Assembly (NCBI GenBank): GCA_000388065.2
Contig: KB932201.1
Reading direction: 5' to 3' (one strand)
From: Fonticula alba ATCC 38817
Taxonomy: Eukaryota > Protista > Nucleariida
DNA length: 34,861 nucleotides
Position numbers and translations under genes: made by a program
Shown: positions 24,846 through 31,328 of the stretch, piece after piece
Numbering within the stretch: position 1 is the first letter of the stretch
Layout: every line of letters starts with the position of its first letter
Notes under the pieces: model-generated
Told to the model about the DNA's origin: nothing
The model's input: the letters and a program-made list of their open reading frames with translations, nothing else
The model's database searches: none

Positions 24846-25202
24846 CATGTGTGTATGCGTGTGTGCGTGTGTGTGGGCACGTACAGAACACCGGGATAGC
24901 CTGGCTGTGAGCCGGCAGCCTCGCAGCACATGTTTGCCTGTCGTTCGAAGAGATATGGGTCCCAGCTTCTAGCTGGTAGAGATTCTTACCACTGGAAGGG
25001 AGCGGGGGGGNNNNNNNNNNNNNNNNNNNNNNNNNNNNNNNNNNNNNNNNNNNNNNNNNNNNNNNNNNNNNNNNNNNNNNCCCCCCCACTCTCCCCCGCC
25101 CGTTCCCTTCCCCCGCCTTCATCTTTGCTTGTTCATTCTCTCGCTTTTCTCTGTCAAGAGCCAAGCGCCATCTCGATTTCCGTCTCGATCACATCCCCGG
25201 AG

Positions 25203-28155
25203 ATGACCTCGAGCTCCGACTACGATCCCGCAACCTCGGCTGTCGAGGTTGCCGCCGCTTCTGAGAGCCTCCCTGTCGCTGAGGCTCCGACTGTCCCCAA
25301 GATGTCTGAGGAGGTTGCCGAGACCATCGAGGCCACTGCTGAGGAGACCGCCGAGGAGGTTGCTGAGACCGCCGAGGAGGTTGCCGAGACTGCCGAGGAG
25401 GTTGCCGAGACCACTGAGGAGACCACTGAGGAGGCCACTGAGGAGGCCATCGAGGAGGTCACTGAGGAGGCTACTGAGGAGGCTACTGAGGAGGCCACCG
25501 AGGAGGCCACCGAGGAGGCCACCGAGGAGGCCACCGAGGAGGTCACTGAGGAGGCCACTGAGGAGACCGCCGAGGCTGCTGCCGAGGAGACCGCCGAGGC
25601 TGCTGCCGAGGAGACCGCCGAGGCTGCTGCCGAGGAGACCGCCGAGGCTGCTGCCGAGGAGGCTGCCGAGGAGGTTGCCGAGGAGGTTGCTGAGACCACC
25701 GAGGAGGCCACCGAGGAGACCCCCGAGGCTGCTACTGAGGAGATCACCGAGGAGGTTGCTGAGACCACCGAGGAGGCCACTGAGGAGGCCACTGAGGAGG
25801 TTGCCGAGACCACCGAGGAGGCCACTGAGGAGGTTTCCGAGACCACCGAGGCTGTTGCCGAGGAGGTTGCCGAGACCACCGAGGAGGTTGCCGAGACTAC
25901 CGAGGAGACCACCGAGACCACTGAGCCTGCTGCTGAGGAGACCACCGAGGAGACCGCCCAGACCACCGAGGAGACCACCGAGGAGACCACCGAGGCTGCC
26001 CCGCTTGCCCACTCGGCTGATGATATTGAGGAGGACGAGGAGGCCACTGAGCCAGCCACCGACGCGATCGAGGCCGCTGCCGGCGAGATCGCCGCTGCCG
26101 TTGTCAAGGCCGCCGTCGAGGCTGCCGTTGAGGAGGCCACCGCCGCCGAGTCGACCACCACCTCCATTGCCACGGCCGACATCGGCCACGACGCCGTCGA
26201 GGAGGCGGCCACCGAGACCGGGTCCTTCGAGAAGGGCACCTCCCGCCCGGCCACCGCCCTCATCAACCAGTTCCTGGTTGCCTTTGCCGAGAAGCTCAAC
26301 AAGCACCTTACTCCTGTCATGCCGGAGGAGCCGGTGGCCGGTGGCGATGCCGGTGCCGCCGTTGAGAAGAAGCCCACCGCCTCGGACGAGGAGCCCATTT
26401 CCACCAGCCCTTCGGAGGTGGTCGTCGAGGCCAAGGACGCCGATGAGACGACTGCCGAGTCGGCGGCCGCCGTCGAGCCGGCTGCCACCGAGGCCCCGGC
26501 CCCCCTGGCCTCGTCTCTGTGGGGCGTGGACATGTCGACCCTGACCGAGGCGCGTGAGACCCCGGCCACCGCGGCCCAGCTGACCTCGGCGCAGCGCCTG
26601 CTGGTGATCAAGTACCTGCGCGCGCGGCAGGGCGACGCCTCCGCGGCCGCCGATGCCCTGCTGGCGACCCTCGTCTGGCGCCATGCCTTCGGCGTCGAGA
26701 GCCTGATGGCCTCTCCGACGGCGGAGGACATCGCCGTGGCCGCGGCCGATGGCGTGCTGAACCCCCATGTGGGCCGCATTGCCGGCATCGATCGCGAGGG
26801 TCACCCGGTTTGCTGGAGCCATTACGGCTCGCGCCTGGACACCGGGAAGCTGCTGGAGACCCCGGGCTTCGAGGGGCTCTTCCTCCGCTGGCGCATCTCC
26901 CTCATCGAGCGTGCTATGCTGATGCTGGACTTCCAGGGCGATTGGAGCCTGGTCGGGGCGGACACCTGCCCTCATGGTCTCGGCACCCATGACACTCTGA
27001 TGCTGACCCAGGTCCATGATTACGAGGGTGTCGGTCTCTTCTCGTCCATGGGCCGCGATGCTCGTATCAAGGCCCTCACCAAGGAGGTCATCTCCCTGAT
27101 GAGCGACCACTACCCGGAGACCCTGCGTCGGAAGTGTGCGTCCCCCTGTTTTGCCCGATGTCTCGTTTTCTGCTCTTCTCTCTCTCTCTCTCTGGCGCGT
27201 GCGCGCGCGCGCGCGCGCCCTCCCTCATGTGCTCACCCGCTCCTCCCTCGCCCTGCCAGTCTTCATCAATGTCCCTCGGCTGATGGCCGGTCTGATGTCC
27301 GTCTTCTCGGCCTTCACTCCGGCCGCCACGAAGTCCAAGTTCATTGTGGCCTCGGCCGGGTCGGCCCAGTCGGCCCTCTTCGAGCACATTGACCCGACCA
27401 ATGTCCCCGTGGAGTATGGCGGCTTCTTCGATGACTCGGAGCAGGCCCTTTCTCGGAGCAGCTTCGATTTGACCGCCCCCGCCCGGCAGGTGGCCCAGAC
27501 CTCGGTCTCGGTGCCTGCCGGCGCGCGCATCCGCGTCAGCTACCATGTCCTTTCCGGCAGTGACATCGGCCTGAAGGTGGCCCTGCTGCCTGCGGTCGCT
27601 GAGAAGGAGGAGGACACCACGTCCTCCGGCGGCGAGTCCGACTCGGCGTCCGAGCCGACCGCTGCCCCGACCGAGGTTGGCCGGGAATTTGTGGTCCCGG
27701 CCGCGGCCCCCGGTGAGGCCGCCTCGCGCAACATCACTGTCACTCTGGACAACCGGTCGGCCATGTTCCTTGGCTGCCGCTACTTCGCTTGCGTCTCGGT
27801 CTTTGAGGCCCCGGCCGTTGAGGAGGCCACTGCCGAGGTTGTCGCCGAGGAGGCCGCCGAGACCACCGAGGAGGTTGTCGCCGAGGAGGCCGCCGAGACC
27901 GCCGAGGAGGTTGTCGCTGAGGAGGTCGCCGAGACCGCCGAGGAGGTTGTCGCTGAGGAGGCCGCCGAGACCACCGAGGAGGCTGTCACTGAGGAGGTCG
28001 CCGAGGCGGCCGCGGAGGCTGTCGCTGAGGAGGTTGCCGAGACCACCGAGGAGGCTGTCGCTGAGGAGGTTGCCGAGACCGCTGAGGAGACTGCCAAGAC
28101 CGCCGAGGAGGTCGTCGCGGAGACCGCTGAGGAGGCTGCTGAGGCCACCGAGTAA
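25203..28155 (+). CDS. Sec14-like (CRAL-TRIO) lipid-binding protein, Sfh5/patellin-like, with C-terminal GOLD-like domain and acidic Glu/Ala/Thr repeat arms
   Basis: Exons 25203-27135 and 27260-28155. Motifs: IKYLRAR...LVWRHAF (CRAL-TRIO N), IDREGHPVCW, FLRWRISLIE, QVHDY, DHYPETL, FINVP and VPVEYGG, then a beta-rich segment with DIGLKV...ITVTLDN (GOLD-like). A phase-compatible upstream exon (about 24930-24975, MFACRSKRYGSQLLA) is possible. Confidence 0.88.
25305..26000 (+). repeat. Coding minisatellite: nested 4-, 7- and 8-codon Glu/Ala/Thr repeats
   Basis: EEVAETA x3, runs of EEAT (gaggaggccacc/gaggaggctact) and EETAEAAA x4 (gaggagaccgccgaggctgctgcc). Confidence 0.9.
27832..28085 (+). repeat. 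Coding minisatellite: 36-nt (12-aa) unit, about 7 copies
   Basis: EEVVAEEAAETT-like unit repeated with substitutions at the C-terminus of the Sec14 protein. Confidence 0.85.
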
Positions 28156-28426: not shown

Positions 28427-30172
28427 TCAGAGGGACGGCGGCAGTTGCGGGGGATGGTGCTGCTGGGGGGTCGGATAGTGCCCAGCCAGGGGGGGCGGCA
28501 AGACAGGGGGAGGCGCGCCCGGCCCGCCGGGCCCCATGTCACCCACTCCAGGGGGCAACTTCGGCGGCAGCGACCCATACTGGTGCTCGGGGCCCATGTG
28601 CCACGAGGCCAGATGCGGGGGCATGGCAGTCGCCTGGTGGGGCGGCTGCGATTGTGAATACATCGACGGATGCTGGGGATGCGGGTGCTGGCCGATCCCA
28701 TGCTGTGGAAATCCTTGCCACGTCCCGCTGGACCCGGGCAGATTCCCGAGAGCCGCCGGGTGTTGTGACTGCGGGAGGGCATACATGTGAGATGCCGTTC
28801 GACCGCTGTAAGTGTGTGAAGAGTGGCCGGCTGCCGCCGCCGAAGCTGCCGCCGCCACCGACAGGGGGCGGTGCGTCGTGGCGAAGGAATGCGGCGTTGG
28901 GGCCGGCGGTGGGGGCTGGCCGGCGGCCGGCGCCAGAGAGGCAGGCAAACTCACCGGGGCAGGGGTGGCGCCCGGGGCCGCGGCGGCCGCGGCGACGGGA
29001 GGGGCAGGGGTGGCGGCGGCGGCGGTGGCGGCGGCGGCCGCGGTAGCGGCACCCCCAGATGCCCGAGTATTCGGGCTGGCCACATAGCTGGGCGTCACTG
29101 GCGGGGGCACCACCGGAGGGGGCTGCGAGATGAAGCAGTACGAAGGGAAGGTCTGCTCATTGGGGCTGACCGTGGCACACCAGTGTTGCAGCCACTGGGG
29201 AAGGATGCCCGAGGCAATTTGCCGGCCGATGAGCGACCGCAGTGACCGGGCCAGGAGGGAGTTGGTGTTGTGTGGCCGGAGGCAGGGCAGGCCAAAGTGC
29301 TGGCCGTCGGTGGATGCCATGGTGAAGAGCACCGCACCGGTGATCCACTCATTTGTGCGCGGGCTGGCGGCCGATCCGGAGCCGGTGGCGGACCCGCCGC
29401 TGCTCCTTGCCGAGCTGCTCCCCGGGAGACGCATGTACGCTCCATCGTAGAGGCCCTCGGCGCGCAGCCAATCGACCACCCGCTGGGCCGACCAGTAGAG
29501 AAGGCACTCATTGCGCAAGTCGGGCGAGTCTCCGACGGCCGGGGCCGGGAGCCCGAAGAGGACCATCGTCGCCCGAAGGTGGAGGATGATGGCCTGAAGC
29601 GGGGTCAAGCCGCAGGTGCCGGGATCCGCGAGGAAGGAGAGGGTCCCGTTGGCGGCGAACACCGTGCCGTTGATGCTGTGCGCACGTAGCCGAGCCAGGG
29701 CCGATGGAGCCAAGCCGCAATCGGCCGCCCAGAGGACAAATTCCGCCGGACGCAAGGCACGAAAGCTCTCGGCCCGGGCCGACGGGTCACACTGCCCTGG
29801 CGGGCCTCCGGCAAGCGATGGTACCGATGCGGCCAGGGTCCGCTGCTCCTGGAGGGCCAGCTCCAGCGATGAGCGGACCTGCACCAGGGCATCGATGGCC
29901 GCGGCGCCGGAGACGTCGACCTGCGTGGCGGTGCCGGCCACCATGGCCTCGAAGGAGGCGCTGCGCGAGGAGCGTTCCCGCTTGGCGGCCTCGTCGAAGG
30001 ATTGCAAGTCAGCCGAGAAGGTGTCCATCTGCTGGAGGAGGCGCTGGCGATCGACGAAGATCTCCTCCACTGGAGGTTGGAGAGGAGGACGGGGTGGGAG
30101 GGGGGGGGGGAGGGGATATGCGGTGAGCATGGCGCGACGCCGATGGGATAGTGGTAGATCAGTCAATGGACC

Positions 30173-30207
<35 letters not shown>

Positions 30208-31328
30208 ACGAGCAGGGGGACGCAGACAACAAAGTGCAAGCGAGGCAGACGCCGCGTCACACGCACGGCGCTTCTTCAGGCGGATCTCCTCCTCCTCGAG
30301 GGTTGTCAGCTCCAGGTAGCAGGTGGCCTTCTGGTCGACCAGGCGCTGGCGCTCGGCCACCGCCTCGCGTGACTGTGCCTCCAGCGTCTGCTGAGCCGCC
30401 CGTAGGTTGCTGATCTTGGAGGCCAGGTGCGAGGTGCACAGGAGGGGAACCGGCTCGGCGACAAGGGCAGAAGCCGAAACTGGGGCCGGGGCGGGGGCCG
30501 GGGCTGGGGCTGGGGAATCGGCCCCACCGCTGGCCAAAGATGCCAGAGACAAGGAGGACATGGAGCTGGCCCGCAATTCGGCCGGATTCGGCCGCGAACC
30601 GACCGACAGGACGCTGACCACGGTTTGTTCGCTGGACTCGCTGGCGCGCGAGGCAAAGTCCCCAGCCGACCGGCCGAGGATCTCGCGGACCGAGGGGGCG
30701 TGCTGAAGCCGAGACAGCCGATCCTTGACCGCCTTGTAGGCCAGGTCCACCGAAGCCGCACGACCCTCGAGGCAATCCTCGACCGACCCGTACACCGGTG
30801 GACTGACGCTGGTGTCTGTGGGCAGGGGGGGGGGAAGGACCGGTTAGTCCGGCTATGGGGGTTGCCGGCCGGGAACACACGTCCCACAGCCGGTCGCAGA
30901 GGACCCGCGGAAGCAGGAGGGCCGGGAGGGGTGGGCGGGGGGAGGGGGGGGGGGGCGAGACCAAGCCCTGTCAAGTCGGGGAAAATGCACACGCACCTCG
31001 AAGAGACAAGGTAATGAGGGTTTTGTTGATACGGAGGGCCTCGATCAGAAAGGCAGCTCCTTCATCACTGATGCCACAACCTTTCATTGGGGGCCGGGAG
31101 AGAGAGAGAGAGAGAGGAGGGGAAGGAAGATTAGCAGGCGAGTGTGGACAGTTGAAAGCCCTGGGGCAAAAGTACCCAGATGCAAGGGGAGGAAGAGAGA
31201 GGGGACGGGGCCGGAGAGAAGACCATGTACCATCGAGGGAGAGAACGAGGAGGGTCTGATTTTGCTTCAGCGAGGTGGAAAAGACGAGCGCCGCGCCATC
31301 GGTGATATTCTGGTTGTCTGGGTCGGAT

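Follow-up and report, generated by a model that had tools for sequence, protein, structure and literature searches.

A Sec14-GOLD protein of Fonticula alba carrying the haem-barcode residues of yeast Sfh5

The window analysed here is a 34,861-nucleotide (nt) stretch of contig KB932201.1 from Fonticula alba ATCC 38817 (assembly GCA_000388065.2), consisting of GC-rich eukaryotic DNA with six assembly gaps (N runs). On its plus strand, the list of open reading frames (ORFs) and their translation define a gene of two exons, 25203-27135 and 27260-28155, which encodes a Sec14-family protein with a CRAL-TRIO domain followed by a C-terminal domain rich in beta strands. A previous reading of the DNA letters (hereafter the sequence-only reading) had noticed in this protein the HxY motif of yeast Sfh5, a haem-binding Sec14 protein, and had proposed that the C-terminal domain is GOLD-like. 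All eight published barcode positions of Sfh5 are kept in the Fonticula protein, the sole change being Ser to Thr (T471). Its C-terminal domain belongs to GOLD, by profile-profile comparison and by fold, and the protein is an ordinary member of a large, mostly unannotated old Sec14-GOLD family carrying the Sfh5 barcode. Very probably, it belongs to the Sfh5 clade of Sec14 proteins and its GOLD domain is a true one.

The gene and its Sfh5-like barcode residues

Exon 1 was found by word search to be 100% identical to a database protein, P0001 (XP_009492456.1 / KCV72755.1), named 'hypothetical protein, variant' and, in UniRef, 'CRAL-TRIO domain-containing protein'. The splice deduced from the DNA (…YPETLRRK/F/FINVP…) is the junction present in the annotated P0001, and the Pfam CRAL_TRIO profile runs on across it (PF00650, residues 371-544, profile positions 8-153 of 153, E 8e-23). 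The two exons were searched separately and P0001 was used as the spliced sequence in later analyses. The strings quoted in the sequence-only reading (LTQVHDYEGVG, IKALTKEVISLMSDHYPETL and FINVP) are all present, the last one in the second exon past the 124-nt intron, and QVHDY does lie in exon 1 at 27009-27023 on the plus strand. P0001 is 727 amino acids (aa) long and the unbroken genomic reading ~942 aa; the annotated protein skips 25422-25886 (155 residues) and 27874-28053 (60 residues), both within acidic repeats. The first of these skips is not bounded by GT..AG, a sign of a collapsed repeat or of an artefact of alignment more than of splicing. Consequently, the length of the acidic repeats is uncertain, while the domain part is not affected. 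The acidic N region (25203-26498; E+D 33%, K+R 2%, isoelectric point (pI) 4.05) and the acidic tail are built of repeats and probably disordered. Upstream of the start codon, at a distance of 123 nt, is one of the N runs (25011-25080), which leaves the 5' end of the gene not fully checkable; five other N runs occur in the window.

An AlphaFold2 model of P0001 residues 296-676 reached a mean predicted local distance difference test score (pLDDT) of 85 and a predicted template modelling score of 0.84, with helices at pLDDT 89-96 over the CRAL_TRIO_N-like (CTN) segment, residues 310-331. By VIA comparison, its Sec14 part aligned with yeast Sec14 (Z 20.6) and could be superposed on the Sfh5 structure 6w32_B (Z 17.4, root-mean-square deviation (rmsd) 3.2 Å over 219 residues), to which its identity of 28% was the highest among all VIA structure matches. 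The best Foldseek matches of the whole model were SEC14L2, SEC14L4 and SEC14L3 over ~390-426 columns (E 7.5e-19), and the CRAL-TRIO part encoded by exon 2 matched SEC14L2 in sequence over residues 193-249. A protein atlas search returned generic Sec14 and GOLD clusters only.

Yeast Sfh5 (6w32) was also the top sequence match among solved structures when exon 1 was the query (phmmer, E 1.3e-6), and LTQVHDYEGVG of Fonticula pairs with MTQVHDYKGVS of Sfh5 residue for residue. Relatives were collected with phmmer, run exhaustively over 1.84 billion cluster representatives; this returned 1345 proteins at E up to 1e-3, and column counts were taken over the best 149 non-self matches. Such a search was needed because word-index searches, which score no more than the 8000 candidates with the most shared words, are swamped by plant patellins and badly under-report the HxY family. 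His and Tyr occupy the ligand columns in 105 of the 149 relatives; together with the residue-for-residue alignment, this argues that the motif is not due to chance and bears out its assignment to the Sfh5 type.

In Sfh5, Y175 is the axial iron ligand and the co-axial H173 is hydrogen-bonded to it, Y128, R148 and K209 contact the propionates, K188 and K192 are lysines of the substrate channel and S191 is the distal serine (PMC7462610). Y128, R148, H173, Y175 and K209 are invariant in the fungal alignment of Khan et al. 2020 and K188, S191 and K192 are conserved (PMC7462610). Traits of the Sfh5 clade are this HxY motif on the strand of the pocket floor and purification with non-covalent haem b, with a Soret band near 404 nm. 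As the chain numbering of 6w32 equals native Sfh5 numbering plus 10, the barcode was read with that offset (Table 1). The five invariant residues (YRHYK) occur together in 87 of the 149 relatives, and Lys at the column of site 489 is found in 87 of the 105 with HxY. The HDY triplet (H155, D156 and Y157) is invariant across 41 HxY-GOLD proteins. In the model, His450 lies on the beta strand 151-156 and Tyr452 directly after it. The pairing of Lys489 with K209, which we take to be correct, comes from the column table and partly from the yeast sequence, since the printed alignment with 6w32 ends two residues earlier. One 401-aa cluster representative, P0173, bears His at the axial Tyr position (barcode YRHHKTKK). 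It is in this a natural equivalent of Y175H, a mutant of Sfh5 in which haem is retained and pseudo-peroxidase activity is raised (PMC7462610).

The C-terminal GOLD domain

The GOLD-like domain had been expected at about 27470-27790, where a beta-rich domain was indeed found (27448-27819), but direct searches did not name it, so that the HMM part of the check set by the sequence-only reading, taken literally, fails. Pfam GOLD models gave no direct match to the Fonticula domain at E up to 10, GOLD_PATL1_C (PF25099) included, whose gathering score was not reached, and a custom hidden Markov model (HMM) of patellin GOLD domains gave no more than E 8. As these scans were empty, a family profile, profile-profile comparison and a fold search were used instead, and it is these that support the GOLD assignment. 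Among the C-terminal pieces of the HxY relatives, Pfam recognized GOLD_2 in 20 of 61, GOLD_PATL1_C in 20 of 61 and EMP24/GOLD in 15 of 61, while 29 of 60 matched the custom patellin-GOLD HMM. A profile built from those 29 pieces, without Fonticula and without a CRAL-TRIO anchor, scored 14.7 bits on the Fonticula domain (E 9e-5) and 25.2 bits at the next iteration (E 5e-8), against 6.1 and then 7.6 bits for the best of 500 shuffles. Compared profile to profile with hhalign, the family and patellin GOLD domains proved homologous (98.9%, E 2e-17, 125 columns).

Modelled alone, the domain (pLDDT 77) has seven strands and one disordered insert. This model was aligned to 48,161 PDB representative chains without a prefilter, and the top three matches were p24 GOLD domains, with 91-96 of 93-108 residues aligned at rmsd 2.1-2.5 Å: p24gamma1 (Z 11.2, rmsd 2.1 Å, 94 of 99 residues), p24gamma2 (Z 10.8) and p24beta1 (Z 9.5). 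The GOLD domains of SPF (Z 8.4) and ACBD3 (Z 8.2) were further matches. Foldseek gave p24 GOLD domains as the two best matches of the lone domain, and the whole-model comparison also matched a p24 GOLD domain, at Z 10.4.

Table 1. Features of the Sec14-GOLD gene and its surroundings (window positions)
Feature	Positions	Strand	Description
Exon 1	25203-27135	+	MTSSSD… start; acidic N region, CTN helices and first two thirds of CRAL-TRIO; ends in phase 1
Acidic repeat array, N-terminal	25308-25995	+	TEEA/TEEV units of 12-45 nt (Tandem Repeats Finder)
CRAL_TRIO_N-like helix	26595-26660	+	P0001 310-331; weak Pfam PF03765 match, E 0.035-0.065, below cut-off
CRAL-TRIO, exon 1 part	26778-27135	+	PF00650 profile 8-98, E 4.6e-8 (exon alone)
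Tyr386	26823-26825	+	Sfh5 Y128; near-invariant in HxY-GOLD alignment (Y91)
Arg409	26892-26894	+	Sfh5 R148; near-invariant in HxY-GOLD alignment (R114)
Loop insertion WSLVGADTCPHGLGTH	26943-26990	+	P0001 426-441; 16 residues directly before the ligand strand; contains Cys-Pro-His
QVHDY	27009-27023	+	His450 (27015-27017), Sfh5 H173; Tyr452 (27021-27023), Sfh5 Y175
Lys468, Thr471, Lys472	27069-27083	+	Sfh5 K188, S191, K192
Lys489	27132-27134	+	Presumably Sfh5 K209; last full codon of exon 1
Intron	27136-27259	+	124 nt, GTGCGT…CAG; exon 2 resumes in another frame
Exon 2	27260-28155	+	Stop codon at 28153-28155
CRAL-TRIO, exon 2 part	27260-27423	+	FFINVP…VEYGG; PF00650 profile 101-153, E 1.9e-7 (exon alone)
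GOLD domain	27448-27819	+	P0001 553-676; seven beta strands
Insert inside GOLD domain	27607-27663	+	Disordered, acidic or Ser-rich
Acidic repeat tail, C-terminal	27832-28152	+	AEEV/AETT units; E+D 40%, pI 4.05
Pro/Ala-rich ORF	28427-30232	-	601 aa; convergent with the Sec14-GOLD gene

The Pro/Ala-rich ORF matched no Pfam family at E up to 0.01. Within the intron, (CT)n and (GC)n microsatellite runs occur at 27160-27225.

Relatives and phylogeny

The sequence-only reading had presented the protein as a bridge between Sfh5 and the plant patellins. As a singular bridge it did not survive the wider search, as HxY-GOLD proteins are widespread in early fungi, slime moulds and algae and occur in marine protists. 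At least 90 residues follow the CRAL-TRIO domain in 59 of the 105 HxY relatives; 35 proteins have fewer than 40 there. Members combining the barcode with a C-terminal extension of at least 100 residues come from chytrids (Borealophlyctis, Quaeritorhiza, Gaertneriomyces), Monoblepharidomycetes (Gonapodya), Blastocladiomycota (Blastocladiella, Allomyces), dictyostelids (Heterostelium, Polysphondylium), chlorophytes (Chlamydomonas incerta, Edaphochlamys), the red alga Porphyridium and marine protists (an MMETSP transcript and transcripts from four ERR1719… runs, which we take to be Tara Oceans runs). Given this spread, the Fonticula protein is not a lone chimera. All of the members named joined the GOLD profile, the two chlorophyte members only at the second iteration, and Acytostelium gave a close match to the family profile, its ligand columns lying outside the count. 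Standard domain scans appear to miss the GOLD domains of this family. Among the members without GOLD are proteins of Pleurotus and Coemansia that are annotated as SFH5 or 'non-classical PITP', the Coemansia record being partial; the annotated Pleurotus SFH5 is among the YRHYK carriers.

Three chlorophyte members (P0049, P0050 and P0052) have C-terminal extensions of 220-290 residues, where the literature reports SEC14-only proteins. A clade of marine-protist proteins (P0010, P0113, P0121, P0133, P0165, P0195, P0176 and P0140) keeps both HxY and GOLD; P0010 was found on short, transcript-length contigs from the four ERR1719… runs (L001-L004). In this clade, Thr or Gly stands where Sfh5 has K209, and four of the eight members have Phe in place of Y128, so that propionate binding would differ.

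A tree was computed from the CTN and CRAL-TRIO columns only, with a careful IQ-TREE run (LG+G4, 69 rows) that followed an earlier FastTree run. The intended outgroups (P0071, P0118, P0147, P0179, P0184 and P0191) turned out to be tandem multi-CRAL-TRIO models; the tree is thus effectively unrooted, and we draw no conclusion from it on the ancestral state of the HxY columns. Land-plant patellins group in one clan (100/100) with Fonticula outside. An intermediate position of Fonticula is neither supported nor rejected: in the maximum-likelihood tree Fonticula groups with the marine-protist HxY-GOLD clade (95/83) on a long branch (0.79), while forcing it with the patellins costs 4.07 log-likelihood units (approximately unbiased test, p-AU 0.40), a cost at which a place on the patellin stem stays tenable. 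GOLD-less proteins are scattered over several positions of the tree. Since each side of the deepest split has homologous GOLD domains, the more economical reading would be that higher fungi lost GOLD.

Proposed ligand, alternatives and origin of the family

The explanation that we favour, and regard as probable as a whole, is a modular cytosolic protein of the Sfh5 clade of the Sec14 family, with a pocket holding haem b and a GOLD domain. It would consist of a long disordered acidic N region, CTN helices, the CRAL-TRIO (Sec14) domain, GOLD and an acidic repeat tail. The Sec14 pocket would hold one non-covalent haem b in place of lipid, a ligand that we predict with reasonable confidence, bound through Tyr452 and His450. 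Tyr452 would be the axial iron ligand and His450, two residues before it on the same beta strand, would be hydrogen-bonded to it. The propionates would be held by Tyr386, Arg409 and Lys489, while Lys468 and Lys472 would line the channel to an open sixth coordination site. The GOLD beta-sandwich may be a module for docking to proteins or membranes, as it is elsewhere among Sec14-GOLD proteins. That haem is bound, and in this geometry, is our inference, and so would be any role in redox reactions or sensing.

Known systems resemble this protein in different parts. Yeast Sfh5 shares with it the Sec14 fold, the QVHDY.GV context, the YPE..…K.F.NVP stretch and the full barcode, but is a single-domain protein of 294 aa; the Fonticula protein has in addition a 430-aa acidic N region, GOLD, the acidic tail and the 16-residue loop before the ligand strand. 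It thus departs from the single-domain architecture of the described Dikarya orthologues of Sfh5, which is a trait of theirs rather than a stated criterion. The plant patellins (PATL1-6; PF03765, PF00650, PF25099) share the acidic disordered N region, CTN, Sec14 and a C-terminal GOLD domain, and the HxY-GOLD family profile finds them at E about 1e-83. They differ at the ligand columns: as the sequence-only reading had stated, they lack HxY, every sampled patellin having T, N or I and then L or F in place of His and Tyr, and they usually have N or Q for Lys489. Patellins bind phosphoinositides (PMC7674337). The animal SEC14L2/3/4 proteins (SPF/TAP; 1olm, 4tlg, 4uyb), whose ligands are tocopherol and squalene derivatives, are likewise two-domain Sec14-GOLD proteins; their full-length identity to the Fonticula protein is 17-19% and the domain orientation differs (rmsd ~20 Å overall). 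They fell outside the 150 best relatives, to which the comparison of barcode columns was confined, and HxY was not shown in them. To our knowledge, no Sec14-fold protein other than Sfh5 has a solved haem complex. The TcCRAL/TRIO hemoprotein of T. cruzi, reported in 2026 with a Soret band at 407 nm and 27.6% identity to Sfh5, is a precedent for CRAL-TRIO haem binding not being confined to yeasts; by its published description it differs from the Fonticula protein in its length of 183 aa, in being without GOLD and in its proposed axial ligand, Met46 (PMC12834515). The sequence-only reading had likewise placed its candidate outside the yeasts, and rightly so, as the host belongs to the Holomycota outside Fungi proper.

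Some of the evidence nevertheless pulls away from a haem-holding Sec14-GOLD protein. The pocket-facing orientation of His450 and Tyr452, on which the proposal leans, is predicted from homology and strand register, and the gene structure is predicted from genomic DNA and the annotated protein. Thr471 replaces the distal serine. The loop WSLVGADTCPHGLGTH next to the ligand strand is specific to Fonticula, its columns 429-434 being empty in at least 144 of the 149 relatives (for four of these columns, in at least 148), and is modelled with low confidence (pLDDT below 50 at model residues 138-144); it could alter the pocket. The Cys-Pro within it resembles a haem-regulatory motif. Haem binding was shown for Sfh5 and two Candida orthologues only, none of them GOLD-bearing (PMC7462610). 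To these are added the empty direct Pfam scans and the phosphatidylinositol (PtdIns)-binding positions, which are partly kept in the Fonticula protein.

The last point bears on a patellin- or SEC14L-like lipid or phosphoinositide transfer protein, with PtdIns or another lipid in the pocket and HxY an ancestral leftover that no longer ligates haem. The overall layout, from the acidic N region to GOLD, is that of plant patellins, word-search matches are mostly patellins (E to 2.4e-27) and the patellin-stem placement is compatible with the tree (p-AU 0.40). In the alignments, the PtdIns site of Sec14 keeps its T..K and YPE positions, and haem-less Sfh5 mutants gain PtdIns transfer (PMC7462610), so that lipid is a possible ligand. 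Yet the sampled patellins have lost His, Tyr and usually the Lys of site 489, whereas Fonticula keeps the whole barcode; its joint conservation over 87 divergent representatives would hardly be expected unless the same ligand had been selected for, and the lysine patch of patellin GOLD domains (…SKKKK…) is missing from that of Fonticula. We therefore consider a lipid carrier with a relict motif unlikely. Even less probable, to a point where we give it very little weight, is that the C-terminal domain is a generic beta-sandwich merely resembling GOLD, and the protein an Sfh5 orthologue with an unrelated tail. The Fonticula domain alone has no Pfam GOLD match, and jelly-roll-like sandwiches reach Z 7-8.8 to many unrelated folds; but p24 GOLD domains head the list of 48,161 chains, with SPF and ACBD3 GOLD domains also among the matches, the profile from patellin-GOLD-matching relatives scores well above the shuffles, hhalign joins the family to patellin GOLD, and the …DN.S… and trailing-strand motifs align. 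As for a mis-assembled or non-functional gene model, whose gaps and collapsed repeats would make the domain combination an artefact, the N run before the start codon and the two skipped repeat stretches speak in its favour. The CTN-Sec14-GOLD part is however a single unbroken reading over one canonical intron without internal gaps, dozens of independent genomes and transcriptomes show the same architecture, and the uncertainty is limited to repeat length, which makes an artefact highly improbable.

A tentative history of the family can be drawn, for which we would claim somewhat less than an even chance. An ancient Sec14-GOLD protein with the Tyr/His barcode might have existed before the split of Amorphea and Archaeplastida; Sfh5 of Dikarya would be its GOLD-less remnant, land-plant patellins would have lost the ligands and taken up phosphoinositide binding, and Fonticula, chytrids, dictyostelids and algae would keep the ancestral form. 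Khan et al. claimed conservation 'across the fungal kingdom' on an alignment of Dikarya only (PMC7462610). Montag et al. 2020 reported only single-domain Sec14 proteins in Chlamydomonas and Volvox, with Sec14-GOLD in land plants only, and a 2023 review holds that the Sec14 proteins of unicellular eukaryotes are single-domain and that animals and plants acquired Sec14-GOLD independently. If true, the existence of an ancient Sec14-GOLD protein with a haem barcode would contradict this view of single domains and independent origins (PMC10225987, PMC7674337). In the literature searched we found no link between Sfh5 and a GOLD domain, nor with patellins beyond citation.

These results revise the origin of Sec14-GOLD proteins and indicate that divergent GOLD domains of unicellular eukaryotes escape standard scans. 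Yeast Sfh5 looks like a reduced descendant of an old Sec14-GOLD family. An older form tethered to a GOLD docking domain may offer a route to the function of Sfh5, for example by way of the partners of GOLD or its localisation. The class of haem-binding Sec14 proteins was presented as a fungal one on the strength of Dikarya sequences; should the barcode predict haem binding, it would reach Holomycota outside Fungi, Amoebozoa, green and red algae and marine protists. Relatives from dictyostelids and Chlamydomonas share the architecture and both groups include genetically tractable species, which would make the question testable.

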